A stretch of 61,642 bases of DNA, the filler included, from Trichosphaerium sp. ATCC 40318 (lineage: Eukaryota > Protista > Tubulinea), in the NCBI GenBank assembly GCA_038496445.1. It is 3 parts of 3 records of this genome, joined end to end, with 100 filler letters (N's around TTAATTAATTAA, not from the genome) between each part and the next. Parts side by side here need not be neighbours in the genome. Positions count along the whole stretch, not along the records: positions 29,008 to 58,528 come from JALMLS010000430.1; 2 more parts are not named here. The stretch is one strand, 5' to 3'. The notes beneath the pieces were generated by a model, which saw only the letters and a program-made list of their open reading frames with translations, was not told the origin of the DNA and did not search any database. Each line of letters opens with the position of its first letter. Position 1 is the stretch's first letter. Positions 29,008 through 58,528 of the stretch are shown piece after piece. The position numbers and the translations under genes are program-made.

Positions 29008-29588
29008 GTCACAAATGGGAGTATCCAAACTTGAGTAGGTCATTGTACTTAAGTTTGTTTTTTTCTTGTCTTATGTACTCTTTAGCTGAAGAGCTATGGG
29101 CAAGAGCACAATTTTCACAGTGGAACGAATTATATTGCAATAAGACAGCTATACGTAACGCCTATATCCAACATGCATCAACAGGAGCAGTACAATTTAC
29201 TTTTCTATATCACAATATGAAGGATCAGATAAACATTCCCTACGATTACAAGATGGAACCTAAGTATGCTATTTGCCTTTTGATCTATTGATTTGTTGTA
29301 GTTTAAGCAGTATTACCTGTATCGCAACTATTGTACGCTATGCACACATCCGGAAAAAAATTATCAGTCTATTGTGCACTTTTTTGGAAGTAGCAGTACG
29401 TTGGTTTTACTTTACCTCCTGTTGATTTATTAATTTGTCACTAGACTTTCATAGAAGATAAGGTACACAGTGATAAAATGTACACAATAACATTGTCAAT
29501 ACCAAAAGTTGAGAGTTCCGTGCTAGATAATTTTCTGCCACTGTACCTAACCCCATATGATAGAGACCGACCTCCAGAAACTTTTTGA
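29008..29588 (+). CDS. NLS-BTB family subfamily A, 3' half (cut by gap)
   Basis: EELWARAQFSQW...LLCTFLEVA|TFIEDK...PKVESSVLDNFLPLYLTPY matches the C-terminal exons of the array genes. Confidence 0.8.
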
Positions 29589-30362
29589 GTTTGTAAAATA
29601 ATAAAATGACTTAAAAATACTGAGTACCATTTTCAGAGACCACAGCAGCCTAGCTAGCACAAGTTGGAATTGTACTATTAACAAGCGTTCTAGTAGAAAA
29701 AAATTGGCTGTACAAAAAAAGTAACAAGCCTAATAGTAGGCAACAAATATTATGCATACCATTCCTTACGCTATTTAAGCGAACAGCTGTAATACGGACG
29801 CCACCAAGTAGTTCATTGAGTAGCGGACAAAACGTGTTCACTGAACAATATTTGACAGGTTCACATTTTAATATGTCAAATATCATGAAATTGCAGTTTA
29901 CCGACATACTGTTGCTCTTGAGCATAACAAATTATTCATATACAGCTTGGAGAAAAACAGCTAGAGCTAGAATAATATTGCAACAGGGACACAATTAACT
30001 CATTGCGGAGTTTGAACAAAACCTTCGCCCAAACCAAAATATTTGAATTGAGTAAGGTCGGAAAACGTTCGTAATAGCACCAGCTACTCTCAAAAGCTAT
30101 CGTGTGTAGATACTATCACGATGTGATACTGTTTAACGTTGGTTCAAACATTTCCTTTTTTAGGTATGCGACGTCTAGAAGTGCTATTTTTTTTCAATTT
30201 TTCAGTACAGTATTAAACTTGCCACGTAAACGATAGGTTTCTAGTTTGCTAGCTTAGAGAAAGGTGTAATGCCAAACCATCGTTGAAACATCCACCTGCG
30301 CTCTTATAAACGTTGATTGAAAAACTGTAAAGTTAGTTTTCAAGCTAATTCACACGTTCGCA

Positions 30363-32173
30363 ATGAGTGCGGCTAAGCGTCAAAGATTGACGCCAGAATA
30401 CCTCAATGGTAAGTTAATTAATAAGATATAGCGTTTAATAATGTGAGTAGAAGATTTAGCTTTTATAGCTAGCTTAGACAGCGCGTTGCTTCTCCCGTAC
30501 TACACACCACCTGGAACCGCAAAAGATGAAGATAAACGGTTATACCAGGAAGACATTTCCCACCTCACATCATCATTGCTTAATACTACGCCAAGCCTTC
30601 AGTATGCTCAAGAACTGACAACGTTTGAACAACTAGAAGCACACGCAAACTTATCACCGTTTTTGTCGTTGGACACAGAATTATACAGGTTCTACTCGAA
30701 TTGCAATTACCGCAGGTCTAACTCTTTTAAGCCATGACATAGCAATACCTAATCCAACCTGGGCAAACCAAAGTATACAATTTATAGAAGGCCACTATAG
30801 ATTCACGTTATCTCAAGCAATTTTGTTTAAGTTCGATGATTCAAAGTTTGCTAGTGCCTACCGCGAACAAAACACTGGATATATGCTCGGGGACGTTATT
30901 CTCGAACAAAATGAGTGCGTGATTGACAATTTTGATTTGATAAAAACATGAATGTCGGAAACGCCATTTCGTTCCTTAACAGTTGTTGCTTTTACGGTAT
31001 TTCTCACTCCTGAATTAACAGGTTCAGCGATGTGCTTGAGACAGTTCTGTTTGTAATGAACAATTTCAACATCAACATTGCAACAACGCAACGCTTGAGC
31101 AGAGGTTTGGATTTCTACCGTATTATACCTATACCAGCTCGTGCGTAATGTTTGAAACAACTTCCGCCTAACTGTACTCCAGCCAAACACAAAGAGGAGT
31201 TCACAGCACCCAGAAAAGTGTTGGAACTACAAACACTCATGAAAGAACAAACTCCATTATTAGTAAAGGAAGTACGTTGATTAAAAATACGTTGTATGGT
31301 TACTAACTGTCAAATGTGAATAGGCGGGCTCTGGTACTTTTAGCTACGAGATGGTGTTGGAAGATGACAATGAGTTTTTATTCTCACCTGAATTAATAAC
31401 CGCCTTGCACACTTATCTAGACACACCCAAGTACAAACTGGTACAAAATGGTATAAAAACCTAACTAACTTACTCTATAGGCACTATCATCAGTTGGACA
31501 TGGATACTCTAAATTGTTGAGATTTAGTTGGCAGAATGTTGATACCACAATGCTAGAAAAATCGTATCAGCTTATTATTGACGGAGTGAAATGGATTCAC
31601 TTTGCTAGTATAGGTACAAAGGAACGCGCAGTGTGATATTGACATTGTTGTAGCTGAAAGGTTGTGGGCAACAACTGTGCATTCGCAGTGGACAGTGGTA
31701 AAGCAACATGACAAAGAGATTATTCAAAGCTACAACACTCAAGTCTTGCGAAACCAAGACCATTTTAGAGTGGCATTGGCATGTCCTGGCTCTTATCAAG
31801 ATGTAGTTCTTTCCAATGTAGACTTCGTAGTATATTTGTACGCACGTGGTGCAGCAACAGCCACCTTATATGTTTATTTAGGAACCACACCTTATTCACG
31901 TCACCAAAGCGTGTAAAAGACAACATTCACGCATGGAATGTACTAACACGTCTTTCATCCATTTTGGAAACGGTAGGTCTCGTTACGTATAAATATACAA
32001 TAGCTAACACAGCCAAGACTTTATCGGGTTATAAGTTTGGCGACACTGAAGTATTAGTTGTGACGCTTGATGTTGGCGAACTTGTGAAGCCTTTAACGTC
32101 TATAATATTGAAAGCCCAAGAGGGAGTTATCGTTCTTGATGAAGTTCCAGAACCAAAGCGTGGTCAAAATTGA
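30363..32173 (+). CDS. Divergent BTB-family gene, subfamily B
   Basis: MSAAKRQRL NLS; IQFIEGHYRFTLSQAILFKFDDSKFA (BTB-like); ERLWATTVHSQW corresponds to the EELWA motif. Similar to 50343-51982. One splice phase could not be reconciled, so it may be disrupted. Confidence 0.6.
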
Positions 32174-32329
32174 TTCTTTACTAAGCAGTACTTGCGACGC
32201 AAAGTGTTCAATAATATTGTAAGCCCTTTCCCAAGATAGTCGAATAAAAAAATAGAAGTACAAAATCTGCGTATCATTTACTAAATAAAGTCAATTGTAT
32301 TCTGAATTACACTGGTGTACTACACTACA

Positions 32330-33873
32330 ATGTCAGAGCCTCCAAAGAAGAAGAAGAAGTTAAATCCAAGCACTGAAACTTCGGTAACGAATGTAAATAC
32401 GACAAACTCTATAGAAGCAAGGCAAGCACCTCTAGCAACGAATGAAACAGCACCAGGGAAAGAAACAAGCGTATCATCAATAGAAACGTCAATTCTGTTT
32501 AAATGTGGTGATTTTAGCTTTGCACTATCGAAAGAGCTACTCAACGCGTATTCATCATCTCTTTTTGCTTCTAAAGTACATTTTGAATCACTGCGCGATA
32601 CTTCTACAAAAACAACTGTCCTGGAGGATTGTAGGCACGTCAACCGATATATTCATCACTGCGACATACTTACTATTTTAACCGTTAGCCACTCAAAGTT
32701 CCTCCCGACAATCTTGCGTTTGATGAAAAAAGAAGAAATGAAGAGTATTGAAGATGCGTCAAATTTGTGGTTTGCAGCTGAATACTATGGTGTACCTATT
32801 GTTTGGAAAGATATCAATATGCCTTTTGGCACGTGAACACTAGTGTACACTTCTTTAATTGCTGATACTGTACATAGGTAGTAAGTTGAAGATTCTTGCT
32901 GTGACAAATATTCTTGAAAAAGTTAGAGAGTTTTGGGAATACCTTCAAGGTTACCTAAAAATGAATGTTAGTCATTCATAGCATCTAATGTCTCTAAGTT
33001 ACAATAGGCGAGTAATGGTGATAACTCAGAGATTGTTGGTGATGAAACAAATGAACAGTATATAACAACACGCTTAGGCAGAGCAGCATTGGCAAAGTAC
33101 TTTAAACAATGTAACTTGGTAAGATGTTAACACTTACTGTTGGTACTAACTATGGTACATTAGCATTACACATATACACAAAATGACACTGGTCTAAACC
33201 AAATAAAAGTATTGTGGACAGATGAAGAAGTTGGACTTGAAGTTGTACAAAAGCGGTGTCTTCATGCTATCGCAGGGATAGAATGGGAGTATGCAAACTT
33301 AAGTATGTTTTCAGGTGCACATTCGGCAGTCTAATGCGTTGCTTAGCAGAACTGTTATGGGCTAAATCACAGTATAAGCGATGGAATGATGTATTTAAAC
33401 AAAGAAAGGAGTTACGGACTGCATATATCCACCAAAGCTCAATAGGTGCAGAATTGTTTATTGTGATGTGTCATGATATGCTAACAGAAAATCCTACAAA
33501 CATTCCTTATCACTTCATGATTAAGCGGCAGTATGTTGTATACAACCTTTGATAAGTTCAGTGTTATTAACTAACTTATGATGTAGTCCAGCGGAGGCTT
33601 ATTCAGTGCAGGCTCTGCTAAAAGATAAACAGATGAGGAAAAAACTTATAAGAATATTGTGCACCTTCTTGGAAGTAGCAGTACGTTGGTTCATCATTTA
33701 TATGATTAACGATTAAAAAGACTTTTGTGGAAGAAAGAATTTACAATAAAAACACGTTCATACTTGCATTAACAATTCCAAAAGTTGATGACGCCATGCT
33801 TGATGACTTTTTACCAATCTTTCTTACTCCATTTGATCCAACGCGAATACATGAAATACTTCAACCAAGATAA
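32330..33873 (+). CDS. NLS-BTB/POZ family protein, subfamily A (8 exons)
   Basis: MSEPPKKKKKLNP...FKCGDFSFALSKELLNAYSSSLFASKVHFESL...HSKFLPTILRLMK..LWFAAEYYGVP...ELLWAKSQ...FLPIFLTPFDP. Confidence 0.85.
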
Positions 33874-34079
33874 TCGACTATGCTTCATTAATAAACTGTA
33901 CTTCTAGGTCAATTTGTGTCGTATACTATTTTTTATCAAGTACGAAATAAAGCATTAGACACTGATATTCCCATTGTTGAGTGGTTCAGTTTACAACCAC
34001 AAAAGTGTGTTTACTTTGCATTCAGTATTTGGTAGATTGATTGTTTATTACACCGCTTAACTAGAATACCGGTTTAAAC

Positions 34080-35560
34080 ATGTGTGAACAACAAAAGAAG
34101 AGAAAATTGATGCACATCACAGAAGCGCCTGTAAACACAGTACTAGCTTCTCAAACGTTAGATTTGGCCGTAGAAACTGTAAAAACATCAGTACAGTTCA
34201 AATGTGGTGATTTTAGCTTCACACTGTCAGAGGAGCTACTCAACACGTATTCATCATCTCTTTTTGCGTCTAAAGTGCATTTTGAATCATTACAAGATAA
34301 TTCAGCACAAATAACGCTTTTGGAAGAGTGTAGGCACGCCAAGGCTCAAAATCATTATCCATTATGTAACTAATTAAGGTTTAGCCATTCTAAGTGTCTA
34401 TCGACAATTGTGAAATTGATGAAAAACGAAAAGATAGAGGATATAGAAGATCCTTCCACTGTGTGGTTCGCAGCAGAATACTATGGCATACCCATTGTTT
34501 GGAAAGACATCAATATGCCTTTTGGCACGTGAAAACATCTTGTTCAATTAGTAATGTATGTGCAGCAAAAAAGTTGAAGTTAGTCACTGTTGCAAATATA
34601 TATGAGCAAGTACAAGAGCTTTGGGAATACTTACAAGTTTACCTTCAAATTAAAGCACGCTAGTATATGCAACCACCAATAATAAGTTGTAATAGGCGGA
34701 TGAGGGTGGCATTTCACAAATTGTTGGCGACGAAATAAACAAACAGTACATAACAACACGCATAGGGAGGGCAGCTTTGGCAAAGTACTTTAAACAATGT
34801 AACTTGGTATGATGCAATGTATTTAATTGATACTAACATATGAACAAAGCATCATAAATATATACGAAGTGATATAGGCGTAACTCAGTTGATAGTAGTT
34901 TGGGGAGATGACGAAGTTGGTCCTGAAGTTGTGAAGAACAGATGTATGCAAGCAATTGCAGGCATTGAATGGACATACGCAAACCTGAGTAAGTTTACTA
35001 CCTAATCCTATTGCCTTCCATTTATTTCTTGCCTGCTTAGCTGAACAATTATGGGCTAAAACACAGAATAAAAGATGGCATGACTTATTTAAAAAAAGAG
35101 GTGTTATGCGCACAGCATATATCCATAGAGGATCAATAGGAGCAGAAACTTTTGTTGTGCTGTGTCATAACAATAAAGCGGTATATCCAACAAACATATC
35201 GTATCATTATCTAATAGAAACAAAGTGAGTTTTGATTAAGTTCAGCTGATTGAAACTAATTCTTGGAATAGTCCAACTGATATATATTCTGTGAAGGCTC
35301 TTGTAAATGATAAAGAGATGCGAAGGAAGCTTATCAGTTTGTTGTGCACATTTTTGGAAATAGCAGTACGCTTTTAACCACGTCATAGACGTCAAATTAA
35401 GGATATGTTTTAGACATTTGTGGAAGAAAGAGTTTACAGTGAAGACACATTTATAGTTGTGTTAACGATTCCAAAGATTGAAGAAGCTATGCTTGACGCT
35501 TTGTTGCCAATCTATCTTACCCCATTTGATCCAACACAAATCAACAAAACAACCGGCTAG
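34080..35560 (+). CDS. NLS-BTB/POZ family protein, subfamily A
   Basis: MCEQQKKRKL...QFKCGDFSFTLSEELL...; same exon series, ending LPIYLTPFDP..TG*. Confidence 0.85.
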
Positions 35561-35703
35561 AAAAGGCTTTCGCTCAACTCGCACAAATATGAAAGTAAAA
35601 AAATAATGTACAAACGTGGCAAGAAGATTACTACTTTAAACACTTTTGCTGCTCATTACATGGGTTGTGAATAATAAATGTCAGGGCTATACAACGAAAT
35701 TTA

Positions 35704-37154
35704 CTAGTACATATGTGGTCGTATGCGAACATACGGTGTTAGATATATTTGTAAGTAATTATCAACAAAAGTGTCACTGATTTGTGGCATAGATAATGTA
35801 ATTTTTATGATATGTTCACTCACTATCTCATCTTCAATAAAGTTCTGATTACATATTAGTACGCTTATCACCAGAACAAAAAAACGTACTGCTGTTTCAA
35901 GGAATAAACATAATAAACTACCAAATTTTTTGCGCATGTGTTCATTGTTTGATAGGGTCTCAACGTTGGCAACTTGCGTTTTGCTACATCCTATTAGTTT
36001 TAAGTCAAACTCCCAACACGTACAAAGAAGTTATTGCATAATCATAATATAGATCTTTCGGAATGTCTACACCCCTAGAGTAATATAGTACAACAAATTG
36101 TAGTGATCCTACCATTGCTTGTTCCAAATACGCTTTCCGTATACGATCTCTACTACTGTATAAGATGTACCATCTGCTTTTTTGAGATTTTGCCCATAAC
36201 TCTTCAGCTAAAACAGGTATCAGGAGGCTATATATTCAAGCAGTGTAAATCAATAAATAAAGCGTACTCAAACTCGCATACTCCCAGTAATTCCCGGAAA
36301 TTGCATCAATACACCTCCGCTTTACAACTTCAGGTCCAACTTCATTGTCTGTCCAAAAAACCGTGAGCTCATCCCTGTCAGTTGTATCTTTTGTGTATTT
36401 ATAGTGCTTGTGCAACTAGTTAGTTTATGAAACGCTTCTTTTACATTTTACCAAGCTACACTGCTCAAAGTACTTTTCTAATATAGTTCTACCCAACTCT
36501 GTCTTCATATATATTGTTGTGCCTCTTGCATCTTTTTTTACGCCACAAACGAAAGCTCTTTGGAGCCCTTCTACAGCCTAAGTATGTTTTATTTGTTGCT
36601 GTTCCAAGGCATCTTACCTGGTCACGCAACGAACTCTGTAGGTCTTCCCACTGCCTCCGCACACAATCAAGAATGAAACTAACCACTAATATTGGTAGCT
36701 TATTTGCTGCACAATGTCAGAAGAAATTAAACAATTGCAGATTACCATAAGGCATATTTAAATCTTTCCAAACAATGGGTACACCATAGTATTCCGCTGC
36801 AAACCACAAACCAGTAGGATCTTCGATACTCGTGATTTCTTCTTTTCTCATCAAACTCAAGATTTTCGGGAGATACTTTGAATGGCTGTTTTGTTTCGTT
36901 AATACGTTGGTTAACACTATAGGAGCGTAGACATACCTACATTCCTCCAGCACGGTTGTAGCCGTTGAATTATCTCGTAGTGATTCAAAATGTACTTTAG
37001 ACGCGAAAAGCGATGATGAATGAGCATTTAGAAGCTCCTCCGAAAGTGTGAAGCTAAAATCACCGCATTTAAACTGTACAGATGTTTCTATGACTGGAAC
37101 TGTAGTTTCTGTAGTTGTGTTCAGTTTCCTCTTCTTTGATGGAGGTTCAGACAT
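35704..37154 (-). CDS. NLS-BTB/POZ family protein, subfamily A
   Basis: MSEPPSKKRKLN...QFKCGDFSF...LWFAAEYYGVPIVW; last exons LLCLFLETA|..YLQIYLTPY. Confidence 0.85.
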
Positions 37155-37288
37155 ATTGTAACCGCTATTGAGCGCCTTAGCGAGTTTATTTGACTTATTA
37201 AGTCGCATCAAAACTGACAGAATCTAATTGATGACTAAATGCAACTTTTATTAACGCAACTGCGTGATAATCTGAAATTCTTACAAAT

Positions 37289-38731: not shown

Positions 38732-39772
38732 TAGATGCGTTCAGGGTTCAATAGCTAAAAAATGAAGTGCAATCAATCTAGATTGACTTTAACAAGTTGT
38801 ACGGCTGAATTCGCTCAAACATCTATTTTACATCAGCTAAAAAGTGGCATCCTAGTATTCAAGCCAACGCTTGATTGTTGTTTTGTTTTTCATACGTTTG
38901 TAACATACGTATTCTTAATTGGGAAAGACTATAAGATATGTAGTATAACTTTGCAATTTTTGCCTTCGCTAGGTGAGTTTCGTCACCTGCACATACAGTT
39001 TTCGAACTTAAGAAAAGAACTGACTCAGATTTCATGAAATCTGACTCAGTTCCAAACGCTAGTCTAAATACAGGTACGTACATAAAGGCTTACCACGCCC
39101 TTTGGCATAATTTGGCGGGCGGGGGCTAACGCGGTTTGTAACAAACTAAACAACTACACTGTATGTGTAAGTACTAACATGCCATAACGCTATGTTGAGG
39201 TAATATTTTCGCGGGTATCATTCGCTAGCAAGTTTCTTTGCAGCTATGATAAGGCCTACGCGCGGTGATGAGGATGGGCATATTTTAAATTGGTATCCTT
39301 TCTGTCTAATTTACTGGCAATCTCATTTCAAGCCTTTCGCTGTTACATGACTACGCTTAGAATCTACGTACGTCTTTAACTCAGCAAGCACAGAAAAGCG
39401 AAAAACTGTGCTTGTAATGATTTTTCCTTCTGCCTGCGCGAAATAAAAATTTTGGGCAGCGCAATGCGTATGGATTGTCAGCAAGTGAGGGAAAAATAAT
39501 AAATCGAACCTGGAGCTTTAGGCAAAAAAAAAATAACAAACCCTATCCTGGCGTTTTGAAACATTTTTGTTCATTTCCCTGTTACCAAGCCTAAAATTGG
39601 TTGTTGTCAGTGAAAGATCACATTTGACGTTGACATCTTGAACAACTGTTAAGCAGTGTAGCGTCATGGCAACTAAAATTATCGCTTAAGAAAGTTGTGG
39701 GAGTACTTGCAAGTGACTGCGTTTGGTATAATTGCCTATTCCAACGATACCTTTAGCTTGAGTTTATTATTA

Positions 39773-41227: not shown

Positions 41228-41422
41228 CGTGGACTAATTGGGGTTCTACCCATGACAATAAGAAACATGACTCGAAGTACCACATTTTTCTGCTGGCAGG
41301 GTGTAGCGGTTGACCAGTCTGTGCGCGTAAGTACACTTGACAAAAAAAAAAGCCATTTATTTTGTAACAACAACTAGCTAGTTACAAACGAATGAGTGGA
41401 GAATTGTTTAGCTATCATGATA

Positions 41423-43477: not shown

Positions 43478-45009
43478 CTAACGCACAGGTCTGGGTAGCA
43501 TATTTAAACTATTTGGAGCTCGCAGTTGCTTGTATGGAGTGAGATACAGCGGCATATATTTTTCAACCATTGATTTGCTAATTTTTGGCATTGGCAACGT
43601 GATTGTAAAAGTATCGTCGTTATATATCTGTTCATCAACCAGTTTCTGTTACAATTTGTTAACAAATGCACCATACAAAAAAGAATGAAGTTCAAGTGAG
43701 AACTAAGGAACGTACTGCTACTTCTAATATTCCACGCACAACACTAACAAATTTTTTTCGAAGCACTGTATTGTGCAGTAGAACTTTAACACAACACACG
43801 TCATCTGGTCTGCAAGTATGTTATTTTAACAAAAATTGAAGTGCATACTTATCAGTTATAATACAATCATGGTAAATATCCTTTGGAGGATCTATTACAG
43901 ACGAATGGTACAATATAACAAATTGTGAAGATGCTAGCGATGCTTCTTGAATAAATCTGTTGAGCAAAATTGTCCTGTTACAGTACACGCTTTTCCATCT
44001 TGCACGTTGTGATATAGCCCACAACTCTTCCGCTAAATAACAATCACAAAACAAAAGTATGGATAGAAACAACGTACTAAAGTTTGCAAACTTCCAGAAT
44101 TGACCTGCAATTGCAGACATACATTTAGCCTGTACAAGTTCGGGACCAACCTCAGTGTCTGTCCAAAACACTACTAATTCCTCCTTACCATCTTTATCTT
44201 TGACATACTTGTAGTGCTTGTTGAGGTTAGTAACTAACAAACCAGTTGTGAGCATACCAGGCTACAGTGTTCGAAATACTGTTCCACAACAGATCTACCA
44301 AACTCTGTTTTTAAATATATTGTTGGATGTCTCGCATCACTATTAATACCACCAACAGAAAACGAATCTAAACCTTGCTTCGCCTGTTCAAATTAGCTTT
44401 GATTTGTAGTATTAAACATACAAGAATAATAAGCTCGTCTTGTAGTCTTTCCCAAAGGTCTTGTACTTGTTTGAGTACATCAGTAACAATAACAATTCTC
44501 AACTTAGTTACTTTAACCTGTCAGCAATTTTAAGATTATATCACGTGTACCATAAGGTATAGGCAAGTCTCTCCAAACAATCGGTACGCCATAGTATTCT
44601 GCTGCAACCCATAAATTGGTTGGATCTTCGATACCTTCCATTTTTTCATGTTTCATAATTTTCAAGAGTATTGGAAGATATTTCGATTGGCTAAACACGT
44701 TAGCAAAGCGAATTTTATGCGGGTATGTACGTGTACTAACCTACATTCCTCCAAAACGGTTGTTTCTGTTAGATTATCTTGTAGTGACTCAAAATGCACT
44801 TTAGACGCAAAAAGAGAAGACGAATACGCGTTTAGAAGGTCCTCCGATAGCTTGAAGCTAAAATCACCACATTTGAACTGTACCATTTCTTTTGTAGTAG
44901 CGGTGGTTTCTTCCGTTGCTTTTGTCGTTTCTGTTTTTATTTTTGTTTCTGTCTTTGGATTTAACTTCCTCTTCTTTTTTAGCGGTTCGCTGCATTCAGA
45001 TTCAGACAT
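43478..45009 (-). CDS. NLS-BTB/POZ family protein, subfamily A
   Basis: MSESECSEPLKKKRKLNP...QFKCGDFSFKLSEDLL...LWVAAEYYGVP...WTDTEVGPELV...EELWAISQ...YMPLYLTPY. Confidence 0.85.
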
Positions 45010-45559
45010 TAGAACAGTGCCAATTTGTTTTAATTTGTTGTTAACAGCTGTCTTTATGTTTGAACAGAAAAGACCGGCTTCCCTAAAATTTTTCGTTGCA
45101 CGCTGTTAAGAACAAATATTTACTGTGATTATTGTTATTTATTGTAAGGGGTAGCAACAGTTGCAACAGCGACTGCAATTAAGCGTTCTACTATATTATA
45201 CCTACCTTACGGAAATAGGCAGCATTCTACCCCGAACAAGACAAACGATACAGTACTTTTAAAATACTTGGGGTTTCTTAAAATGTATTTACGCCATAAA
45301 ATAACTACAAATACCAAAGTAACTTCGCGAAACCGTTCAAAAGTCTGAGTTGTTTTTCACTGAAATAGATAGTCCGTGTCAAATGTCCATTGTCATTTTG
45401 TTCAGTGAAATTAAAGTGTCACATTCCAAATAGTGAACGACTGCGTTGATTTAAACTGTATATGCTTGTTTACTTATTACGTGTAACGACTTTGCATTGG
45501 TAAAGATATCCGAGTTAACCAGAATTAGCAGCTTTTTCTTGTGGAGGTAGCTTTTCTAT

Positions 45560-46174: not shown

Positions 46175-47640
46175 ATGATGTCTGAGCCACAAAAAAAGAA
46201 GAGAAAATTGAATCCGGTATCTGAAACGGCCAACACAACAACAGAAACCGCAACTAATTTTAAATGTGGTGATTTTAGCTTTGCGCTGTCGAAAGAGCAT
46301 CTTAACGCGTATTCATCGTCTCTTTTTGCGTCTAAAGTACATTTTGAATCATTACAAGATAATTCAACAAAAACAACGCTTTTGGAGGAGTGTAGGTACG
46401 CATATTAACCCTTGCTTATTGTAAGCCACGCTTACTCCAAAAACAGCCATGCAAAGTATCTCCCGAAAATCTTGAGTTTGATGAGAAAAGAAAAATCACA
46501 AGTATTGAAGATCCTGCAGGTTTGTGGTTTGCGGCAGAATACTATGGTGTACCCATTGTTTGGAAAGATATAAACATTCCATTTGGCACGAAAAATACTC
46601 TGTAACTTAAAAAATGACAGCAATTGATTTAGCGAGCAAGCTACCAATTCTAGTTGTCACCAATATTCTTGAACGTGTTCAGTCACTCTGGGAATACCTA
46701 CAAGTTGACCTGCGTGATAACGTAAAGTATTTCAAGCTATGAGGTGCTAACATGTCTTAGGCACACTTTGGTCAAGATAGATACTTTGTTTGTCGAGCAA
46801 ACAGTAGTGCAACAGCGTACAAAATTTATCTAAAGACAGAAACCGGTAAAACGTTACTTAAAAAGTACTTTAACCAATGTAACTTGGTACTGAGTTTCAA
46901 AAATATTTTAAGTATTACTAACCTCTATTAGTTTTATAAATACCTGAAAGATGAAAAGGGTAATGCTGACCAGTTAACAGTATTTTGGACAGATGATGAA
47001 GTTGGTCCTGAAGTTGTACAGAAGAATTCAAGCAATCTCTGGCGTGAAATGGGACTACACTAGCCTCAGTATGTATTGTAGTATCGAATTAACTTGTACT
47101 ACACTTCCTAATGATACACAATCTAGCGGAAGAGCTTTGGGCCAAGACACAACGCCACATATGGGAACCTCTACTCTGTAGTAAACAGACTTTAATTAAG
47201 GCCTATGTTGAGCACGCAACACTAGGAGACACAGAATTTGTGCTACTTTATCACTCAAGAGGTACAGACATTCCAGATGATCTCTACCATGATTATGCGC
47301 TAAAAGTATTGTGTGTTGTGCTTGTTTGAGTTTTTTGGCTAACAGGGGAGTAGTACAGACCAACAATCAGCTAGTGCTGAGAATGTAGTAAAAGATGAGC
47401 AAATGAGAAAAAAGCTTGCTACTCTATTGTGTATGTTCTTGGAGACAGCAGTACGTTGCTTTTCACGCTTTTTTTCCTTAGTATATACGTAGAATTTTAT
47501 CAAAGACGAGGTTATAAGTCAATATACACTAAGAATCACGCTATCAGTGCCAAAAATCATTAACGAGTTTATGGACTCTTACTTACCTATCTATCTCACA
47601 AACAATACGCTATTGGATCGTTACTGCAGCTTGATTGATC
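46175..47640 (+). pseudogene. NLS-BTB subfamily A copy with apparent frameshifts
   Basis: Full exon series is present, but there is a 1-nt deletion at ~46491 (AAAGAAAAATCACAAGT vs paralog AAAGAAGAAATCACGAGT) and a deletion at ~47020. Confidence 0.7.
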
Positions 47641-47949
47641 GTTGCACACTCTTTTTTTTGCAACTAATTGCCACGTGTTTTGAGGTTGGGTTCGATTTTC
47701 GTTTACGTCACTTGTAACCTCTACGTATATTAGTATACAAGATACATTAAATTTTAAAGGTAGTGCATGACGTGGTTATTCACAGTACTTGAGACTACAA
47801 GGCCATTTCATTTTTTCGTTGTAACGTTTAAAAAAAAAATTATGCTTGAAATTACACATTTTCTACAACCACGGCATCACATTTCTCCTGTCATGCCTTA
47901 TAAAGTACTTTACTTGTTTATTATAAAGTGTCTGGGGATGACTTAACTG

Positions 47950-48148
47950 TGTCACGACTAGGAGACTGATAAGACCTCATTCACATTGAAGATCATTCAC
48001 ATAACGGATTACTCACATTCATGAGTTCATTCTCAACCTTCATGAGATAGTTCATGAGATCATTCATGAGATTGTAACCGTTCTTGTAACCTAAATAAAC
48101 AGATATCTTAAAACCTAACAAACTGGCTCAATGCAGGCCGCTATGAGA
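47950..48148. repeat. Possible solo LTR/TE relic with internal TTCATGAG(A) repeats
   Basis: Starts TGTCACG and ends TATGAGA (near-TIR). Four TTCATGAG copies at 48019-48071 and an AATAAA. No TSD found. Confidence 0.35.
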
Positions 48149-48214
48149 CCTTTACAAAGTAATTGTAGAGATTAAGTCTTATGTGCCAACCTAATGTTCC
48201 ATAGTTAAATCCTA

Positions 48215-49125
48215 GCGCTGAAACTAACGCTTAAGCGACCTTATCAACAACTCAAGCTGAAACGGTATAAATGTGGTGATTTAGCTTTGCACTATCAGAA
48301 GACCTTCTCAACGCGTATTCATCTTTTTCGCGGCTAAAGTACATTTTGAGTCATTACAAGATAATTCATCAACAACAACGCTTTGAGGAATATAGGTGCG
48401 TGCAATCAAATAAAAAGAGTTACGACAAAAGCCATTCAAAATCTGCCAACAAAAAATTAAATAAGTATTAAATGAACAATGCATGTCCGAACCGCAACAA
48501 GAAGCGAAAGTTGAATGCAAAGACTGAACCGAGCGTAACAAAGATAAATACGGCATCACAAACAACGACGTCAATACCGTGCAAGCATATATATTAAGTT
48601 GACCTTGCTAAAGCAATTAAGTTGAAGGTTGTTGCTGTTAATAATATACTCAGAAGAATACGAGATGATTGGGAAACTATTAAAGTTCACAATACAAAAA
48701 GTAAGTTCTTCTCAACCAACACTAAATGATAAGGCAACTCTTGGTGTAAACTCGTATCCTGTTGTTGCTAACGTAAGAGATAGTATATTTGAGGACAGAA
48801 TTGCGTAGCAATAGCGTTGATGAGGTTACAATATATTGGTCAGACCAAGAATTGGATATTGAAATTGTAAAGGAAACATGTATTGAAGCAGTTTCAGGAC
48901 ATTTTTGGAAGTTTTCAAACGCTGTCAATCCCAAAAGTTGATGAATCAATGATTGATAATTATTTACAAACATGCATCGCCCCATATGCTGAAGATCAAA
49001 CTCTTCCAGGTAGTCCATAAACTATTAGGATTAATTGTAAGAATAAATTCCGGAAACGGAAGGCTCTAGTATATAATAAATGTCGAATGAATCCTCCTGA
49101 AGGTTTAGGTACTACTTTGATGGTA
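48215..49125 (+). pseudogene. Degraded, rearranged NLS-BTB subfamily A pseudogene(s)
   Basis: Frameshifted BTB exon (AAATGTGGTGATTTAGC...AAAGTACATTTTGAGTC), a second N-terminal relic ATGTCCGAACCGCAACAAGAAGCGAAAG at 48483, and fragments of middle and last exons. Confidence 0.8.
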
Positions 49126-50342
49126 TAGACGGGCACCAGTTTGAATCAGTTGTTCACTTTTTGAACGGTGACACTTTCGTTTCACTGAACAAAATGACTT
49201 TTGACACATGAATCGGCTGACGCGCAATGTCAAATATTTCAGTGTATCTTGTAACATTTTAAACTTGACACTATAACGCAAAAACTATGGCAATTTGAAG
49301 TATTGTGGTAGTGACTGTTGAATATGTTACAATGGTTGGCGATAGTCTACAAACATGTAGGTGTTGATAACAAATCTATCGACTTTTTTAAATACTTGCC
49401 AGGTATTTGGTTTTCGTAAACAACTAAGTGTTATAGTGTTCAACTATAAAATAGCTATCCGCTAAATAAATCAACGTTGAACCAAGGTGGTACAGATATT
49501 GGTGGTTTTGAATATGGGAGAACAATTACAGGTTTATTCAGGGAAATGGCGCTACGAGGTGCCCATATTGGTACCTTTTTGGCCAGTCCTATTTTGACAT
49601 TGTGCCTTAGTTTTTTAATCATTGATAAGCTCATGCAGAACATAGCGTGTAAGGTAGATTCTAAAACAAATAGCTAAATACTTATCTATCTTGATAAGGA
49701 TCCATAGCTTCAATGATATAAGGCTCCCGTTAATCAATAATTAGACAACTTAATTGTCTCATGGGTCTTCCACGTGCTATCTGATATCTCTGAAAAGGTC
49801 CATACATCTACTGTAAGTGCACTGTTGGTTAATTAAATACCCACATCATCATAAAATTACACTTTTCCACGAACCAGTTTGGGTTTTGTTTAGTTTTTTA
49901 ATTAAATATGCTCATTATTACCGCCCTGCGTAGTCCTCAACACAGAAACAATTTGAAATAAAAACGACCTATGTCAGCCAAAACCAAGTTCCACCTTTAA
50001 AAGGGCAGAAGATAGGGTGGTGAAGTATCTCCACTGAAAGCTACTTCACTCTCCCGTATTTTTTAGTTTACGCTACAAAACGTTGACTTACGTATAGTTG
50101 ATAGTGCACAAAAAGGTTGGTACCGCGTGAAACAAAAAACCTTCAACGATTCCTAATTTGGTAGTTATTCTTATTCGGAACATGTAACGTCCGAAAAAGA
50201 TTTCGGAGATCTACAAGGTCTTTTTTCACCACAGCATCTGCTGTAGGGCAGCGCATTGCTGTTGGTTGTTAATTATTATTTTTGCGAACAGTTGGTTTTC
50301 AATCAAAATTGTTTTAAGTTTTTCACCACAACTACTTCAGCA

Positions 50343-51982
50343 ATGAGTGAGCCGAAGAGGACTAAGGAAAATGAGAGCTTTGTAAATGACAGTGCTTATA
50401 TAGATAAGGTGTATGGTGCGTGTGTAGTTTAAACCTATCTACAACTTTTGTATTTATTCTAGTACAGCAGAAATCAGTCGCGACACTGCTTTGGTGTTGC
50501 CAGAAGATAACTCTTCCAGTAACGAAAAGGCGAATACCAACACTATTATTCAAACAGATATCCAAACAGTAGTGTGTCCAAAGCAATGGTACGTGTACTC
50601 CTCTGCCAAGCCAGTACAATTTTGACTATTCTAGGATTCCTACGTCAGACCTAGACCCACTGATTATATTCAAACATTGTGGTCGTCGATTTGAGTTTAC
50701 GAAAGAGCAACTTCTAAAGTATGAGGATTCTATGTTTGCACAACGTTTTATAAGAAGAGTGCTCCAAACGCCAAACAATCTGATATTTGAACTAAACGAC
50801 GTGTACGTTGATTGATACTAGAGTTTTTGCTCACTACCAACAAACAGGCGCTATTCGTCTGTCTTTCCAACAATCATGGAGATAATGAAACAGCAAAACC
50901 CGCAATTACCAACAGGCGATGCAGCTAAAGTTAAAGAAGTGAATGACGCACTGAACTATTTCGGTGTGCGACTTCCAGGGAGTACGCTATGGCTAAAAGT
51001 TTGGTCTAACTTGTGTGTTCAGGCTTGTCGCCGTCAAATACTTTCGCTGCTATACAGGAGCTTTTGGATAGCCTGAACGCTAACTCAGTCTTACAAAACA
51101 GAGTAAGTTGATTGAGATGAATTGGTTATTAACATATTCAATAGGCTAATTTGGGCGAATTTGATTACGTATTCAATTTGGATCCCTCAACGGAATATTT
51201 ACTGTCAGCCAATGCTACAGCAATATTAAATGAATATTGCAACAATTGTGACTTTGCTTTGGTACAAAATCCTTCATGAACCGCAAATAACGTTACGTGT
51301 TTAGTCGTACAAAATTGAAGCAAATTCTTTCTACTTTATGTGGGATGACTCAAACATAAGCGACGATATTAAAAAAAATGCCTACGAGAATATTAAGAAA
51401 GGAAGTTTTCATCAGTGCAACAGCTTATGTATGAAAGTTCTGTTTTCACTATTAACTGTATCTAGGCGAGAGGTTGTGGGCAACCGCTGTGTTTGTAAAC
51501 TGGCAGCCTGTTAGAGCATATGACATAGCCATTGCCAATGCATATGAAGAACAGGTTGACAAACAAGCTTACGAGTTTGGTTTTTCGATAACGAATACTG
51601 AACGCCAAATCACAGGCGTGGTGCTAAACATTCACTTTGACATATCCATGTGCGTATCTGGTATAATAGCTCAAACCTCATTTGTTTACTAGCCATGGCG
51701 ACTTTTTTCTCAAATCAGGTTCTCTGCATACGCAAAAATTAGAAGAGCACGTGTGGGCAAAATGTCGAAAATCAGTACGTAAAGAAAATCAAGCCCATCT
51801 AATTGTTTTCAAAGAAAATTGTTCGTCGCAATGGCGTGCATGAGGGCAAACTGTACGCTTTTTGGTTCGAGGTAAAAAGTGTGGGTACCCTAGTTTCGGA
51901 GCATATCCAAACAAAGATGCAAGCACGCGACATTGTACAAGAACCAAGACCAGAAGAAGATCTACTTTTGCCAAACATTTAA
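50343..51982 (+). CDS. Divergent BTB-family gene, subfamily B
   Basis: MSEPKRTK; IFKHCGRRFEFTKEQLLKYEDSMFA..|RYSSVFPTIMEIMK..DALNYFGV (BTB); ERLWATAVFVNW; ends IVQEPRPEEDLLLPNI*. Confidence 0.75.
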
Positions 51983-52116
51983 AAAACAGTCTGCAACAGC
52001 GCAAAGAGTTAATAAAAACATCAAAATGGTCTCTTTTTACAAGTACTTGCTTAATCAACGCATTTAAGTGGTTGTAACGGTATTAAATAAAATTAAGCTG
52101 AAACAACGACATCGTA

Positions 52117-53634
52117 ATGTCTGAACCACAAAAAAAGAAGAGAAAGCTCAACCCCAAGACTGAACCAACCGCAGCAAATACAAAAACGTTAGTAGCACCA
52201 AAAGAAAGTGCGATACAGTTTAAATGTGGTGAGTTTAGCTTCACACTATCGGAGGAGCTTCTCAACGCGTATCCATCATCTCTTTTTGCGTCAAAAGTAC
52301 ATTTTGAATCACTACAAGATAATTCATCAGCACCAACCATTTTGGAGGAATGTAAGTACGTGCGAAGACTCTGTAGTATTTATAGATGCATTTTTTAACC
52401 AAAATCAGCCATTCAAAGTATCTACCGACAATCTTGAGTTTGATGAAAAGTGAAATACTGTCGAGTATAGAAGATCCTGCAAATTTATGGTTTGCAGCTG
52501 AATACTATGGTGTACCTGTCGAATGGGAAAAACTAAATATGTTTGTGGGCACGTACATGTTATTATTCATGGCTTACGACAATCTAGTAAACAAACTTCC
52601 AATTGTGGCAACTACGTTCCTTTTCAAAAAAATACAAAAAAAGTTCAAGTCCGTTGCATCTACCCTAAGAAAAGCAGTAAGTTCTTACTGCAAGAACTAC
52701 CAACACATTTTGATCTTAAATACTAGGCGGCTGTTGGTAGAACTATGACTATTATTGGTGATGAAAAAGACTGTTTATTTATACAGACAAGATATGGTAG
52801 AACTGCCTTAAAAAAGTACTGTGAAAGGGCTGCCTTGGTATGGCTCCAACAAGCTTCGCAGTACACTAACCTCGCTTATTAGCATATTAAATTTACAAAA
52901 AATACCGATGAACGTTTTGAAGCAGCAATTTGTTGGAGTGATGACGATGTTGGGCCTGAACTTGTAGGGACGAGGTGTATTGCAGCAATTTCAGGAAAAT
53001 TTTGGGATTTTGCTAACTTGAGTATGCTTGTACTTGTGTTAATGTACCTTACCTGAAGTATGTTGTTTTAGCTGAAGAGTTATGGGCCAAATCTCAATAC
53101 TACATATGGAATACGGTATATGCAAAGAAACCACGGTTTCTTTCTGGCTATCTTCAACGAGGAACAATAGGAGCATCAACGTTTACAGTACTTTGTCGTG
53201 ATTGGAAGTATGACAGACATGGCATAACCTGTGACTTTATGTTTGACACTCAGTACTGCATTCTCTATCCAATTATTTATTACTGACTTCTGTTACAGTC
53301 CAAAAGATATTCCCAATGCATTGGACCTTGTGAAAAATGCACAAATGCGAAATAAGCTACGCCGGCTGATGTGTGCCTTCTTGGAAGTAGCAGTACGTTA
53401 TCTTCGATGTTTTACTCACAAAATCCCTTTTGTACTTACAAATTGCGCCAGACGTTTGTGGAAGAAAAAATCGTCAAAGAAGACGCATTTATCTTCATAT
53501 TTACATATCCAAAAATTGATGAATCTGTGCTTGATGATTATCTGCCTATCTACGATCCTGAACCTTATCAAAAAGATGAAACAATTCCTGAGACACTACA
53601 TTTTCCACACTTAGACTTTGTGCCTAAGAGATAA
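52117..53634 (+). CDS. NLS-BTB/POZ family protein, subfamily A (8 exons, ~390 aa)
   Basis: All exons splice in frame from MSEPQKKKRKLNP to PETLHFPHLDFVPKR*. Confidence 0.9.
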
Positions 53635-54023
53635 CTAATATGTATCACCTCAAGTGAATCAATAAACTACAGATGTAAGATTACGAATTAACCAATTCAC
53701 AAGTTACATGAAGATAAATGATGCTAGTTTACCGAATACAGGAGGCGCCGAAGGATAGTTCCTAAGTTTTTTCGGTGATTGTTTTATTGTCTGCGACTTT
53801 AATAACAAGGGTCTCAGGCTTGTGACCAAGCGGTCAAGCGAAGAGACGGAGGTCTCCTCCAATGTGGTGTTGTTTTTGTTTCTAATGGACCATAGGATCT
53901 AGCGTTTCTAACGTTTTCTCACCGCCAACACAAAAAGTTTGATAGTGCATGTTACAAGTTCCTGTTTACGGACTCAAAATGACACTTTCATTTTCAATCA
54001 AAGCAAACTTTTACGACAACAAC

Positions 54024-55463
54024 ATGTCTGAACCTCAACAAAAGAAGCGAAAATTGAATCCAACAGCTGAAACAAGCGCAGCAAAAACAGAAAGCTCAAT
54101 ACAGTTTAAATGTGGCGATTTTAGCTTCACACTATCGAAGGAGCTTCTAAACGCGTATCCATCATCTTTTTTTGCGTCTAAAGTACATTTTGAATCACTA
54201 CAAGAAAATTCATCAACAACAACGCTTTTGGAGGAATGCAGGTGCGTGAAGACTCCTTCATAATTCACAATGTGTCGCTGATAACAAACCAGTCATTCAA
54301 AGTATCTACCGACAATCTTGAGTTTGATGAAAAGAGAAAAACGCTCAAGTATAGAAGATCCTGCTGGTTTATGGTTTGCAGCTGAATACTATGGTGTACC
54401 TGTTCAATGGGAAACACTAAATATGACTGTGGGCACGTGCTTGCAATGGTTAAGTAAGCTTACAACCAATCTAGCTAACAAGCTTCCAATTATGGTTATT
54501 ACATACCTTCTATCAGAAATACAAAAAGAGTTTCAGGCCCTGGAATCTACCTTAAGAAGTGTCGTAAGCTTTTTTCTACTTACGCAGAATGCCAATCTTG
54601 TATATAGGCGGCTACAGGTAAAACTACAAGTGTTATCGGTAATGAAAAAGACTGCGTATTTGTCCATACAAAATTTGGCAGAACTGCTTTAGAAAAGTTC
54701 TGTGAAGACTGTGCCTTGGTATGGTTCCAGCTGGTACTTGACAGTACAAACTAACCCATCTGTTAGCATGTTAAATATACAAAAGATAGCGAAGGAAAAA
54801 TTGAAGCAACAGTTTGTTGGAGTGACGCTGAAGTTGGACCTCAACTTGTAAACAAGAGGGGTATTGATGCAATTGCAGGACAATTTTGGGATTTTAAAAA
54901 CTTGAGTATGTTCTTGATCTTTAAGTAAACTCCCTAATACTTGTTTTAGCAGAAGAGTTATGGGCCAAATCTCAGTATTGTACATGGCACACAATTTTTA
55001 ACAAAAAAGAAGGGGTACGTCCGGAATATCTTGCTAAGGGAACACAAGGAGCATCAAGGTTTATTATACTTTGTCGTGATTGGAAGCATACCAGCGCAGC
55101 AAATATACCTAATGATTTTATACTTAATACTCAGTACGTTGCTATAAAGTGTTTTTTATCTAACTATTTGTAGTCCAGATGATATAGCTAATGTAAAGGC
55201 GCTTGTGAAAAATCCACTCATGCGAGGAAAGCTTGTTGGTTTGCTTTGTATCCTGTTGCATATAGCAGTATGTTTAGCGTTTGTCTTTTATGTCATTCCT
55301 TATGCTAACAATTGATTAGACGTTTGTGGAAGAAAAGATATACACTCCAAATGTATTTACCATCACATTGTCGTTTCCAAAAATTGATGAGGCTATGCTT
55401 GATGCCTATCTACCTATCTATAGATCCACATATCAAAAAGACAAAACAGTACCTAGGATATAG
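54024..55463 (+). CDS. NLS-BTB/POZ family protein, subfamily A
   Basis: MSEPQQKKRKLNP...; same exon series, ending YLPIYRSTYQKDKTVPRI*. Confidence 0.85.
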
Positions 55464-55709
55464 GACATAATTATGTAAACCTAATACTAATGCAAACAAT
55501 TTTAAAACATTCCCTTGTTGTTATTCTTGTTGCTATGTGAATGTACAGCAAACAAACTTCAAGATTATATACAGACAAAGAATGCTGCAAAGCGTGAATG
55601 TGAACCTTAGAGATAGCACGTGTCTTCTGACCTTTCCTGATTAAGACTTCTCGAAAGAAGAATAGTATTGGAGTCAACAAACTAAGCAACTCCACTTCTG
55701 ACGCCAATC

Positions 55710-57230
55710 ATGTCTGAACGACAAAAAAAGAAGCGAAAATTGAATCCAACAGCTGAAACAAGCGTAACTAAAACAGAAGCATCAGTACAACCTATATTAA
55801 GCTCAATACAGTTTAAATGTGGTGATTTTAGCTTCACACTATCGAAGGAGCTTCTAAATGAGTATCCATCATCTCTTTTCGCGTCTAAAGTACATTTTGA
55901 GTCATTACAAGATAACTCATCAGAAATAACGCTTTTGGAGGAATGCAGGTAGGAATCGCACGTAGACTAGTAGTGCTTACTTTTATTGATAAACCAGTCA
56001 TTCAAAGTATCTATCGACAATCTTGAGTTTGATGAGAAAAGAAGCACAGACAAGTATTGAAGATCCTGCAAACTTATGGTTTGCAGCTGAATACTACGGT
56101 GTACCTGTTGTGTGGAGGCATATAAATATGCTTGTGGGCACGTGTGCGTTACTGTTTAGCGAACTAACAACAATCTAGTACACAAGCTTCCAATTGTAGC
56201 AACTACATACCTTCTCAAAGAAATACAAAAAAAGTTGAGGTCTCTTGCATCTAAACTAAGAAAAGCAGCAAGTTCTTTCACTATGACTCTTTCGCCTGAC
56301 AAAATGCTGACTTGATCTACTAGGCATTTGTTGGTAGAACTATGAGTGTTATTGGTAATGAAACAGACACTGTATTTGTTCAGACAAGATTTGGTAGAAC
56401 TGCTTTAGAAAAGTACTGTGACAGCGCCGCCTTGGTACGTTCACAACTAGGGCTTCACAGTACAAACTAACCTCACTTATTAGCATGTTACATTTACAAA
56501 GAATAAAGATAACCGTTTTGAAGCAGCAATTAGTTGGAGTGATGACGATGTTGGGCCTGAAGTTGTAAAGAAGAGGTGTATTGCAGCAATTTCAGGAAAA
56601 TTTTGGGATTTTGCCAACTTGAGTATGCTTGTACTTGTGTTAATGTACCTTACCTGAAGTATGTTGTTCTAGCTGAAGAGTTATGGGCCAAATCTCAATA
56701 CTACATATGGAATACAGTATTCAAAAAAAAATATAGGCTACTACAAGGCTTTCTTCAACGGGGAACAAAAGGAGCATCAACGTTTACAGTACTTTGTCGT
56801 GATTGGAAGTATGACAGACATGGAGTAACATGCGACTTTATGTTTGACACTCAGTACTGCATTCTCTATCCAATTATTTATTACTGACTTCTGTTACAGT
56901 CCAAAAGATATTCCCAATGCATTGGACCTTGTGAAAAATCCACAAATGCGGAAAAAGCTCCGTAATATAATGTGTGCCTTCTTGGAAGTAGCAGTAAGTT
57001 ATCCTTGAGTTTTCTCAAAAAACCGCTAGCATTATTACTAACGCTGTGATAAGATGTTTGCACGAGAAAAGATAGTCAAAGAAGACGCATTTATCTTCAT
57101 ATTTCTTTATCCAAAAATTGATGAAGCAATGATTGATGCGTATCTGCCTATCTATGGTCCTGAACCTTATCAAACAGACGAAACAATTCCTGTGACACTT
57201 CACTTTCCACACTTAGACTTTGTAGACTAA
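55710..57230 (+). CDS. NLS-BTB/POZ family protein, subfamily A (mosaic)
   Basis: MSERQKKKRKLNP...; 3' part nearly identical to 52117-53634, ending LHFPHLDFVD*. Confidence 0.85.
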
Positions 57231-57514
57231 AAATTAAGTTTGTGTACAAGCTTAAGACAGTGAGTGAATCAATAAACTACAACTTCATAGACGTATTAAT
57301 TTAATCAAAGGAATTGACTACCAGTAATCCCAGTATTGAGCTTTCAGTACATTGTAGCAAGCAATATTAAACGTTGAATAAACATGATCGTACCCATTTT
57401 ATCAACGAGGTATGGATTATTAAGGTTATGAGTAATGCCAAACTGAAATTTGAATCAACACGTCTTGAAATGTGACACTTTAGTTTCACTGAACAAAATG
57501 ACAGTGCATTATCT

Positions 57515-57651
57515 ACGTAAATGAAACTTTCGCTATTTGGTTCAATATAAAAGATATGGCTACTACCGTTTCAGAGCATATTAAAGAAAAAATGCAAGCT
57601 CGGGAAATCGTTCAAAGTCCCAGACACGAAGTTGCTGAAGAGGAGATTTAA
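57515..57651 (+). pseudogene. Last-exon relic of a subfamily B gene
   Basis: NETFAIWFNIKDMATTVSEHIKEKMQAREIVQSPR aligns with LYAFWFEVKSVGTLVSEHIQTKMQARDIVQEPR at 51850-51952. Confidence 0.65.
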
Positions 57652-57803
57652 TTCTCCCACAACAGGATTTGTATTTTTCGAAACAACATCTACAGTTCGA
57701 CCTTAAATAAACATCAAAAAAACAAGTAATTTTTTGTGCTTTATTAGTCAACGTGTTTAAGTGTCAAACCCTGAACATTTACTTATAATCAACCGTAACA
57801 ATC

Positions 57804-58528
57804 ATGTCTGAACCACAAAAAAAGAAGCGAAAACTGAACCCAATCCCTGAAAAAAGCGTAGCAAAGACAAAAGCGTCAGTATCAACAGCACAAAGAGCAA
57901 CACAGTTTAAATGTGGTGATTTTAGCTTCACACTATCGGAGGAGCTACTCAACGCGTACTCATCATCTCTTTTTGCGTCTAAAGTACATTTTGAGTCATT
58001 ACAAGATAATTCAGCTAAAATAACTCTGTTGGAGGAATGCAAGTACGTATGAGACTAATGCAAATACTAAGCTCCCTTGAAATAACGAAAAACCAGTCAT
58101 TCAAAGTATCTACCGACAATCTTGAGTTTTATGAAAAAAGAAGTACTGCCAAGTGTCGAAGATCCTGCAAATTTATGGCTTGCAGCTGAATACTATGGTG
58201 TACCAATTCAATGGAAAAAACTAAATATGCTTGTGGGCACGTGCTTGTTATTATTCAGCGAACTTACAACAACGTAGCTAACAAGCTTCCTATTGTGGCA
58301 GTTACATTCCTGTTAGCAGAAATACAAAAAGAGGTGACGGTCCTTGAATGCGCGCTACGAAAAGCAGTAAGCTTTTTTCTACAACTTACATATACATGAA
58401 TTCTAATTTATGTATTAGGCGGCCATTGGTATAACTACGAGGATTATTGGCAATGAAAAGATTGCGTATTTTTACAGACAAAATTTGGTAGAACTGCCTT
58501 AGAAAAAGTTTTGCAATGACTATTCTTT
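57804..58528 (+). CDS. NLS-BTB/POZ family protein, subfamily A, 5' half (cut by gap)
   Basis: MSEPQKKKRKLNP...QFKCGDFSFTLSEELL...LWLAAEYYGVP...NKLPIVAVTFLL. Confidence 0.8.

Follow-up and report, generated by a model that had tools for sequence, protein, structure and literature searches.

A constrained tandem gene array encoding a putative BTB-like module and a divergent C-terminal region in Trichosphaerium sp. ATCC 40318

Introduction

Lineage-specific expansions of BTB-type proteins are common. The hallmark of the MATH-BTB and F-box families of nematodes and grasses is a substrate-binding domain under positive selection (Thomas 2006 as cited in PMC4334554; PMC4091423). Large lineage-specific expansions of BTB proteins, which are of unknown role and are recognized by the Pfam BTB model, have been described in Glomeromycotina fungi (PMC9453076). 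Here, we compare these systems with a gene cluster in the genome of the tubulinean protist Trichosphaerium sp. ATCC 40318 (assembly GCA_038496445.1). The window, that is, the whole stretch of DNA at hand, measures 61,642 nucleotides (filler included) and joins three parts of three records; the analyzed piece that carries the cluster spans ~30 kb at positions 29008-58528 (JALMLS010000430.1) and contains 0 internal N.

The cluster is a real and constrained gene family that has expanded in tandem and has undergone turnover and gene conversion. We hold with moderate confidence that it represents a lineage-specific birth-and-death family, the proteins of which combine a basic import motif, a BTB-like module, and an α/β C-terminal region without detectable relatives. 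Given how common BTB-type expansions are, a family of this kind is already known in outline. The family stands out in that both halves of the protein lack detectable relatives among 1.84 billion representative proteins, while the genes are clearly constrained.

Array Organization and Gene Structure

Copies were mapped by a motif scan, a list of open reading frames (ORFs), tblastn with exon fragments, and DNA alignment of the copies. Nearly all of the longer ORFs in the piece (G+C content 34-39%) belong to one protein family or run antisense to it. The piece holds 11 type-A copies, one gutted A relic, two B copies, two C copies, and one small B-like relic, with ~16 related genes clustered in mixed orientation. 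These results bear out a previous reading made without database searches (hereafter, the sequence-only reading), which had described a contig filled by one gene family with B and C copies and relics in mixed orientation. The copy counts of the two agree, but the two copies that it described as cut by gaps are truncated by the edges of the piece. Eight of the 11 type-A copies yielded intact models, one (A7) is frameshifted, and two (A1 and A11) are truncated by the piece edges. The copies and relics, together with the parts of the reference model A8, are as follows.

29008-29588, plus strand: A1, 3' part only, running from late exon 5 through the stop codon; truncated on its 5' side by the left edge
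~30640-32170 (approximate limits), plus strand: C1, diverged paralogue; BTB-like 'IQFIEGHYRFTLS' start and 'ERLWATTVHSQW' motif
32330-33873, plus strand: A2, intact, 8 exons, 404 aa
34080-35560, plus strand: A3, open 8-exon model, 385 aa; degenerate N-terminus (MCEQQKKRKLMH); GC donors
37154-35704, minus strand: A4, intact, 8 exons, 376 aa
~38740-37460, minus strand: B1, diverged paralogue lacking the KKKRK motif; 'VVFKCGNKLYKLS' and 'EEKLWATAVSSCW'; collinear with B2
41227-39773, minus strand: A5, intact, 8 exons, 371 aa
42878-41518, minus strand: B2, diverged paralogue; 'FSCGDFSF', 'HSKQLPTIVKLMKNEK', and 'DEKLWATAHSAGW'
45009-43478, minus strand: A6, intact, 8 exons, 404 aa
45668-45971, plus strand: short B-like relic, resembling the 3' end of B2
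46178-47717, plus strand: A7, type-A pseudogene with two frameshifts and no open model
48205-49017, plus strand: gutted A relic; frameshifted exon-1 fragment and bits of exons 3, 5, and 8
~50343-51700, plus strand: C2, diverged paralogue; starts MSEPKRTKE (degenerate basic motif); 'IIFKHCGRRFEFTKEQLL' and 'GERLWATAVFVNW'
52117-53634, plus strand: A8, reference model, intact, 391 aa
52117-52355, 52409-52548, 52588-52676, and 52727-52837, plus strand: A8 exons 1-4
52883-53021, 53072-53252, 53299-53392, and 53452-53634, plus strand: A8 exons 5-8
52117-52155, plus strand: A8 basic motif, resembling a nuclear localization signal
~52213-52548, plus strand: A8 BTB-like module
54024-55463, plus strand: A9, intact, 8 exons, 374 aa
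55710-57230, plus strand: A10, intact, 8 exons, 391 aa
57804-58528, plus strand: A11, exons 1-3 plus a portion of exon 4; truncated by the right edge

The frame changes in A7 fall in exon 2 (~46453-46492) and exon 5 (~47018-47020). Intron 1 of A2 has a GC donor and can be read through in frame. Because the closest pair of copies, A8 and A10, share only 82% of their DNA sequence and because orientation is mixed, the array is genuine, and the haplotype or assembly duplication that the sequence-only reading had itself raised as a concern was ruled out.

The type-A gene comprises eight exons and seven very short introns and encodes 371-404 aa in the eight open models (A2-A6 and A8-A10), consistent with the eight-exon structure originally proposed; the anchors quoted for the family (FKCGDFSF, ASKVHFES, HSKYLP, WFAAEYYG, EVGPE, EELWA, FLEVA, PKID, and YLPIY) were likewise found. 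Exon/intron borders were carried across copies via the alignment and were chosen to keep frames open, with the borders of intron 2 and the GC donors being the least certain parts of the models. The 56 modeled introns measure 34-75 nt (median 45.5). Donors are mostly GTAYGT (49 GT and 7 GC), acceptors are TAG (34), CAG (15), or AAG (7), and a CTAAC-like motif lies ~12 nt upstream of acceptors. GC donors occur, for example, at 32635, 34334, 34655, and 56268; some GC donors and AAG acceptors may be modeling errors, especially those of intron 2. The splice signals and short introns have what we take to be a fungal appearance. Coding G+C content is 37.5% (31% at third codon positions), and an alternative genetic code is unneeded, as the models end in TAA or TAG and contain no internal TGA, TAA, or TAG. 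In several copies AATAAA occurs 20-40 nt past the stop (~53655-53662, ~57250-57260, and also downstream of A2) and is likely a polyadenylation signal. Upstream of the ATGs, no promoter k-mers common to the copies were detected.

Divergence, Constraint, and Gene Conversion

Mean pairwise amino-acid identity among type-A copies is 74% (66-85%) in the BTB-like module, where 42 of 95 columns are invariant, and 43% (34-80%) in the C-terminal region, where 30 of 244 columns are invariant. Pairwise ratios of nonsynonymous to synonymous divergence (dN/dS, or ω) were 0.13-0.76 in both structured regions and exceeded 1 only in the short linker of one pair. Maximum likelihood estimation under codon models (own script) with the eight intact copies, a dataset of low power owing to its size and to saturated dS, gave an M0 ω of 0.29 for the C-terminal region and 0.25 for the BTB-like module. 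The original description of an 'invariant' BTB domain joined to a 'hypervariable' C-terminus was therefore overstated. That eight copies retain open 8-exon models, and that ω stays far under 1 in each half of the protein, points to functional genes.

Total tree length was 2.9 substitutions per codon for the BTB-like module and 7.8 for the C-terminal region (~2.7-fold). Four-fold sites have diverged less in the BTB-like module (0.36) than in the C-terminal region (0.47), and between clades third-position identity was 0.69 in BTB-like exons versus 0.47 in C-terminal exons. Because synonymous divergence is also lower in the BTB-like module, its conservation is not simply a matter of tighter protein constraint. 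Intron 1 interrupts the conserved module (e.g., 52213-52548), yet it has itself diverged to the level of shuffled sequence. The combination of low synonymous divergence in the exons and a shuffled-level intron therefore suggests that conservation of the BTB-like exons is partly exerted at the nucleotide level, with either exon-confined gene conversion or an RNA/DNA constraint as the cause. This opposition of saturated introns and conserved synonymous sites presents a small, testable puzzle concerning concerted evolution in gene arrays.

In many copies, antisense ORFs of 77-153 aa lie over exon 1, at 44648-45109 (plus strand) and at 32320-32643, 52083-52340, 54035-54268, 57779-58042, and 48308-48574 (all minus strand). 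They overlap the region of conserved synonymous sites and are probably a by-product of conserved codon choice.

A tract of ~500 bp in A8 (52900-53400) is 93-100% identical to A10 (~56500-57000) across exons 5-7, introns 5 and 6 included, and contains an identical run of 106 nt (53233-53338 = 56834-56939). Outside of the tract, A8 and A10 are 53-90% identical, and A9 sits between the two. The tract is the product of recent ectopic gene conversion.

The N-Terminal Half and Its Probable Fold

Type-A proteins comprise, in order, MSEPxKKKRKLNP (in almost all copies), a low-complexity linker of T, S, E, and A that varies in length, a ~95-aa module interrupted by intron 1, and a ~245-aa C-terminal region. 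The basic motif (K-K-K/R-R/K-K-L) occupies residues 5-11 in nearly all A copies, with variants KKKRKL, KKKKKL, SKKRKL, and QKKRKL, and falls in a segment with a low predicted local distance difference test score (pLDDT). It matches the consensus of a classical monopartite nuclear localization signal (NLS), with a K-K/R-X-K/R core in an exposed, unstructured segment, which agrees with the classical importin-α signal named in the sequence-only reading and makes this SV40-like sequence a candidate import motif.

The BTB/POZ core is built from three β-strands and five α-helices, arranged as β1-β2-α1-α2-β3-α3-α4-α5. Queries for profile, fold, and large-database searches were exon ORFs, genomic read-through ORFs, or alignments, and spliced models served for alignment and codon analysis; the N-terminal read-through ORF of A4 served for phmmer, the fold model, and the ESM atlas search. 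The AlphaFold2 model of this ORF has the order β-β-α-β-β-α-α-α. In a Foldseek search of the PDB with this model, every one of the 50 matches listed includes a BTB domain of the KCTD/T1 type (designed BTB fusions account for a few), with 104-117 aligned columns, E values of 0.24-2.3, and template modeling (TM) scores of 0.25-0.35. The exon-encoded halves map collinearly, with residues 22-75 matching the T1 domain of Kv4.3 and residues 80-136 the latter half of KCTD17. By ESM features, 56 of the 100 nearest clusters were PF00651 BTB (score 0.91), followed by Skp1/Elongin-C, and an unbiased structure scan was enriched in BTB/T1 entries far above their share of the PDB. Such homogeneous match lists are informative because an equally mediocre model from the C-terminal region drew a heterogeneous list (see below).

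Several results weigh against this assignment and against the broader explanation built on it. A Pfam hmmscan of 16 exon or read-through ORFs from A, B, and C copies recovered no BTB family even at E<=10, such that PF00651 (BTB), PF02214 (BTB_2), and PF03931 (Skp1_POZ) were all without a match; a PDB profile search with the N-terminal alignment recovered no BTB match; phmmer with the A4 ORF returned 0 matches among 1.84 billion representative proteins; and a word search and a profile (alignment A1) returned 0 matches at E<=1. The A4 model is mediocre (pLDDT 64, predicted TM score 0.38) and includes a 17-residue intron read-through, and all structural scores for the module are below the usual significance levels. 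Finally, cullin binding, nuclear import, and partner binding by these proteins are at present pure inference. A PPR match in the N-terminal PDB profile search sits on intron-derived columns and was discarded. Scans of metagenome contigs and of 2.9 million viral contigs with the conserved exon-1 alignment gave pattern matches only, with 0 confirmed in the former and no relative confirmed in the latter.

Collectively, the structural and language-model evidence is weak but convergent, and a BTB/POZ fold of the T1/KCTD-like kind is the best reading of the module, which we consider likely to adopt that fold. The BTB domain named in the sequence-only reading thus stands as a probable fold, on matches that are all weak, and does not stand as a sequence or profile match.

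If the module has this fold, it may only oligomerize, without a cullin link, like T1 domains and several KCTD or zinc-finger BTB proteins, and the proteins might then be nuclear scaffolds or regulators of chromatin or transcription that have sub-functionalized as paralogues. Several T1/KCTD domains do not bind Cullin-3, and T1/KCTD domains are the top structural look-alikes of the module; the NLS-like motif and purifying selection over the whole length also agree with such a role. However, no DNA-binding or chromatin domain was detectable in the exons with Pfam, and a complex prediction for four copies of residues 22-136 scored 0.00 and returned no verdict, which is evidence neither way on self-association. 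We regard this possibility as tentative and, on balance, unlikely.

We find it doubtful that the module is not a BTB domain at all, in which case the protein would be a true orphan with two unknown folds and the resemblance a by-product of a common small α/β arrangement. The lack of profile and sequence matches to BTB families is what this would predict, and the resemblance scores are not above those of unrelated rows in the same lists. Nevertheless, two independent methods (3Di/structure alignment and ESM features) agree on one superfamily, and both the enrichment of BTB/T1 entries in the unbiased scan and the heterogeneous list drawn by a C-terminal model of equal quality also speak against it.

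The C-Terminal Region

The C-terminal region (exons 3-8, ~245 aa) aligns among copies nearly without indels around conserved anchors, and its core motif (LWA..Q/H..W) is retained even in subfamilies B and C. No Pfam match was obtained with exon ORFs and no match was obtained in the PDB profile search. The piece that was folded is a read-through of exon 5, intron 5, and exon 6 of A6 (43851-44216), 122 aa in length with a 15-residue intron insert. This fragment is predicted to be α/β (pLDDT 68), with a hairpin, a helix, two long helices, and two strands, and fold searches of the PDB and ESM Atlas with it gave a heterogeneous list with TM <0.4. A weak lead to β-trefoil lectins (ESM 0.87) was ruled out, as the model has long helices, hhalign detected no self-repeat, and no trefoil was among the fold matches. 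In these Pfam, PDB profile, and fold searches, all conducted with fragments, the region fits no known family, as had been supposed at the outset.

Evidence Bearing on an Immune or Selfish Role

The sequence-only reading proposed that the array is a nuclear surveillance repertoire of Cullin-3 substrate receptors, the C-terminal domains of which diverge under positive selection imposed by viruses, intranuclear symbionts, or retroelements. The coupling of a conserved adaptor-like module to a more divergent one, within tandem copies that undergo turnover, is compatible with this proposal, and gene conversion could reshuffle variation among copies. Site models applied to each domain nevertheless recovered no sign of an arms race. 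In the C-terminal region of the eight intact copies, M1a assigned 67% of sites to a class with ω 0.21 and the other 33% to one with ω 1, and M2a yielded no positive-selection class (2ΔlnL, twice the log-likelihood difference, of 0); M2a also provided no gain for the BTB-like module. Family-wide ω is hardly higher in the C-terminal region than in the BTB-like module, the C-terminal region is nearly free of indels and keeps its LWA..Q/H..W core in B and C, and no relative was found among viral contigs. For A8/A9/A10, the young trio, a class at ω 2.6 took up 17% of sites, which is suggestive but not significant (2ΔlnL 4.9, p ~0.09) and is confounded because A8 and A10 share the conversion tract. 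The immune reading is therefore currently without support, and we consider surveillance under positive selection improbable.

A decaying or selfish array (cargo of a transposon, a killer-type element, or pseudogenes that are not transcribed and serve no host function) is very improbable. Although orientation is mixed and relics and one frameshifted copy occur, open 8-exon frames persist in eight of the nine complete A copies in the face of saturated synonymous and intron divergence, ω is 0.2-0.5, and the piece contains neither a transposase nor terminal repeats nor any other mobile-element gene.

Proposed Evolution and Function of the Array

The preferred explanation, a lineage-specific birth-and-death family, can be laid out in steps. 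The array would have grown through tandem duplication and inversion, copies would have been lost through frameshift and deletion, and segments would have been swapped between copies by ectopic gene conversion, with both halves of the protein evolving under what appears to be purifying to relaxed selection. Type-A proteins, given their import-type motif, would enter the nucleus, where the BTB-like module would drive oligomerization and may dock a cullin-3-type scaffold, and the less constrained C-terminal region might bind partners that differ between paralogues. A more specific version, in which sequence-orphan BTB-fold adaptors carrying a new α/β recognition domain form a nuclear Cullin-3 repertoire diversified by duplication and conversion, as a fungal or protist counterpart of nematode MATH-BTB and F-box proteins, strikes us as decidedly improbable.

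Other Features of the Array

Short intergenic segments common to upstream regions (45384-45443, 49147-49206, and 57459-57506) are 83-93% identical over 42-60 nt, and 51802-51979 resembles 57511-57641 in translated comparison only (52-57% amino-acid identity). Such segments, common to different copies, probably either derive from the duplication unit or represent shared regulatory sequence. The spacer that separates B1 from A5 contains a near-perfect (94%) palindrome of 36 nt (39017-39052), and the sole tandem repeat of the piece (a 12-nt unit repeated 2.8 times at 48039-48072) is directly upstream of the gutted A relic. Scans of the piece for tRNA and Rfam families returned nothing relevant, and a search of phage DNA returned no match.

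Comparison with Known Systems

KCTD/T1-type BTB domains (BTB_2, PF02214) are the best structural matches of the module by both Foldseek and VIA-align. The module resembles these domains in length (~95 aa) and in predicted order (β-β-α…β-α-α-α), and the array proteins resemble KCTD/T1-type proteins in that an N-terminal BTB or BTB-like domain precedes a family-specific C-terminal domain of 100-250 aa. Unlike KCTD/T1-type BTB proteins, they begin with a basic import motif followed by a low-complexity linker, have a C-terminal region without known relatives, and show no significant sequence or profile similarity to that family. Were both the BTB fold of the module and a novel C-terminal fold confirmed, the family would be a very divergent branch of the BTB superfamily and the C-terminal region would be a new candidate partner-binding domain.

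The BTB and BTB-Kelch proteins of poxviruses and giant viruses differ from the array genes, which are intron-rich and cellular, have no detected Kelch or BACK domain, and have no relative among the 2.9 million viral contigs.

With the MATH-BTB and F-box families of nematodes and grasses, the array shares lineage-specific tandem organization, birth-and-death turnover with pseudogenes, and the pairing of a better-conserved adaptor module with a more divergent second module. Unlike those families, it has no MATH or other recognizable substrate domain, and family-wide tests detected no positive selection in its C-terminal region. Its two halves also differ in synonymous divergence. As an analogy, the nematode and grass adaptors thus appear to fit the architecture but not the positive selection that defines them.

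The array and the BTB expansions of Glomeromycotina share a fungus-like gene structure and a large, lineage-specific BTB-type expansion of unknown role, although the array genes, unlike those of Glomeromycotina, escape the Pfam BTB model. By analogy, the Glomeromycotina expansions appear to be a closer ecological parallel to this array than the nematode and grass families.

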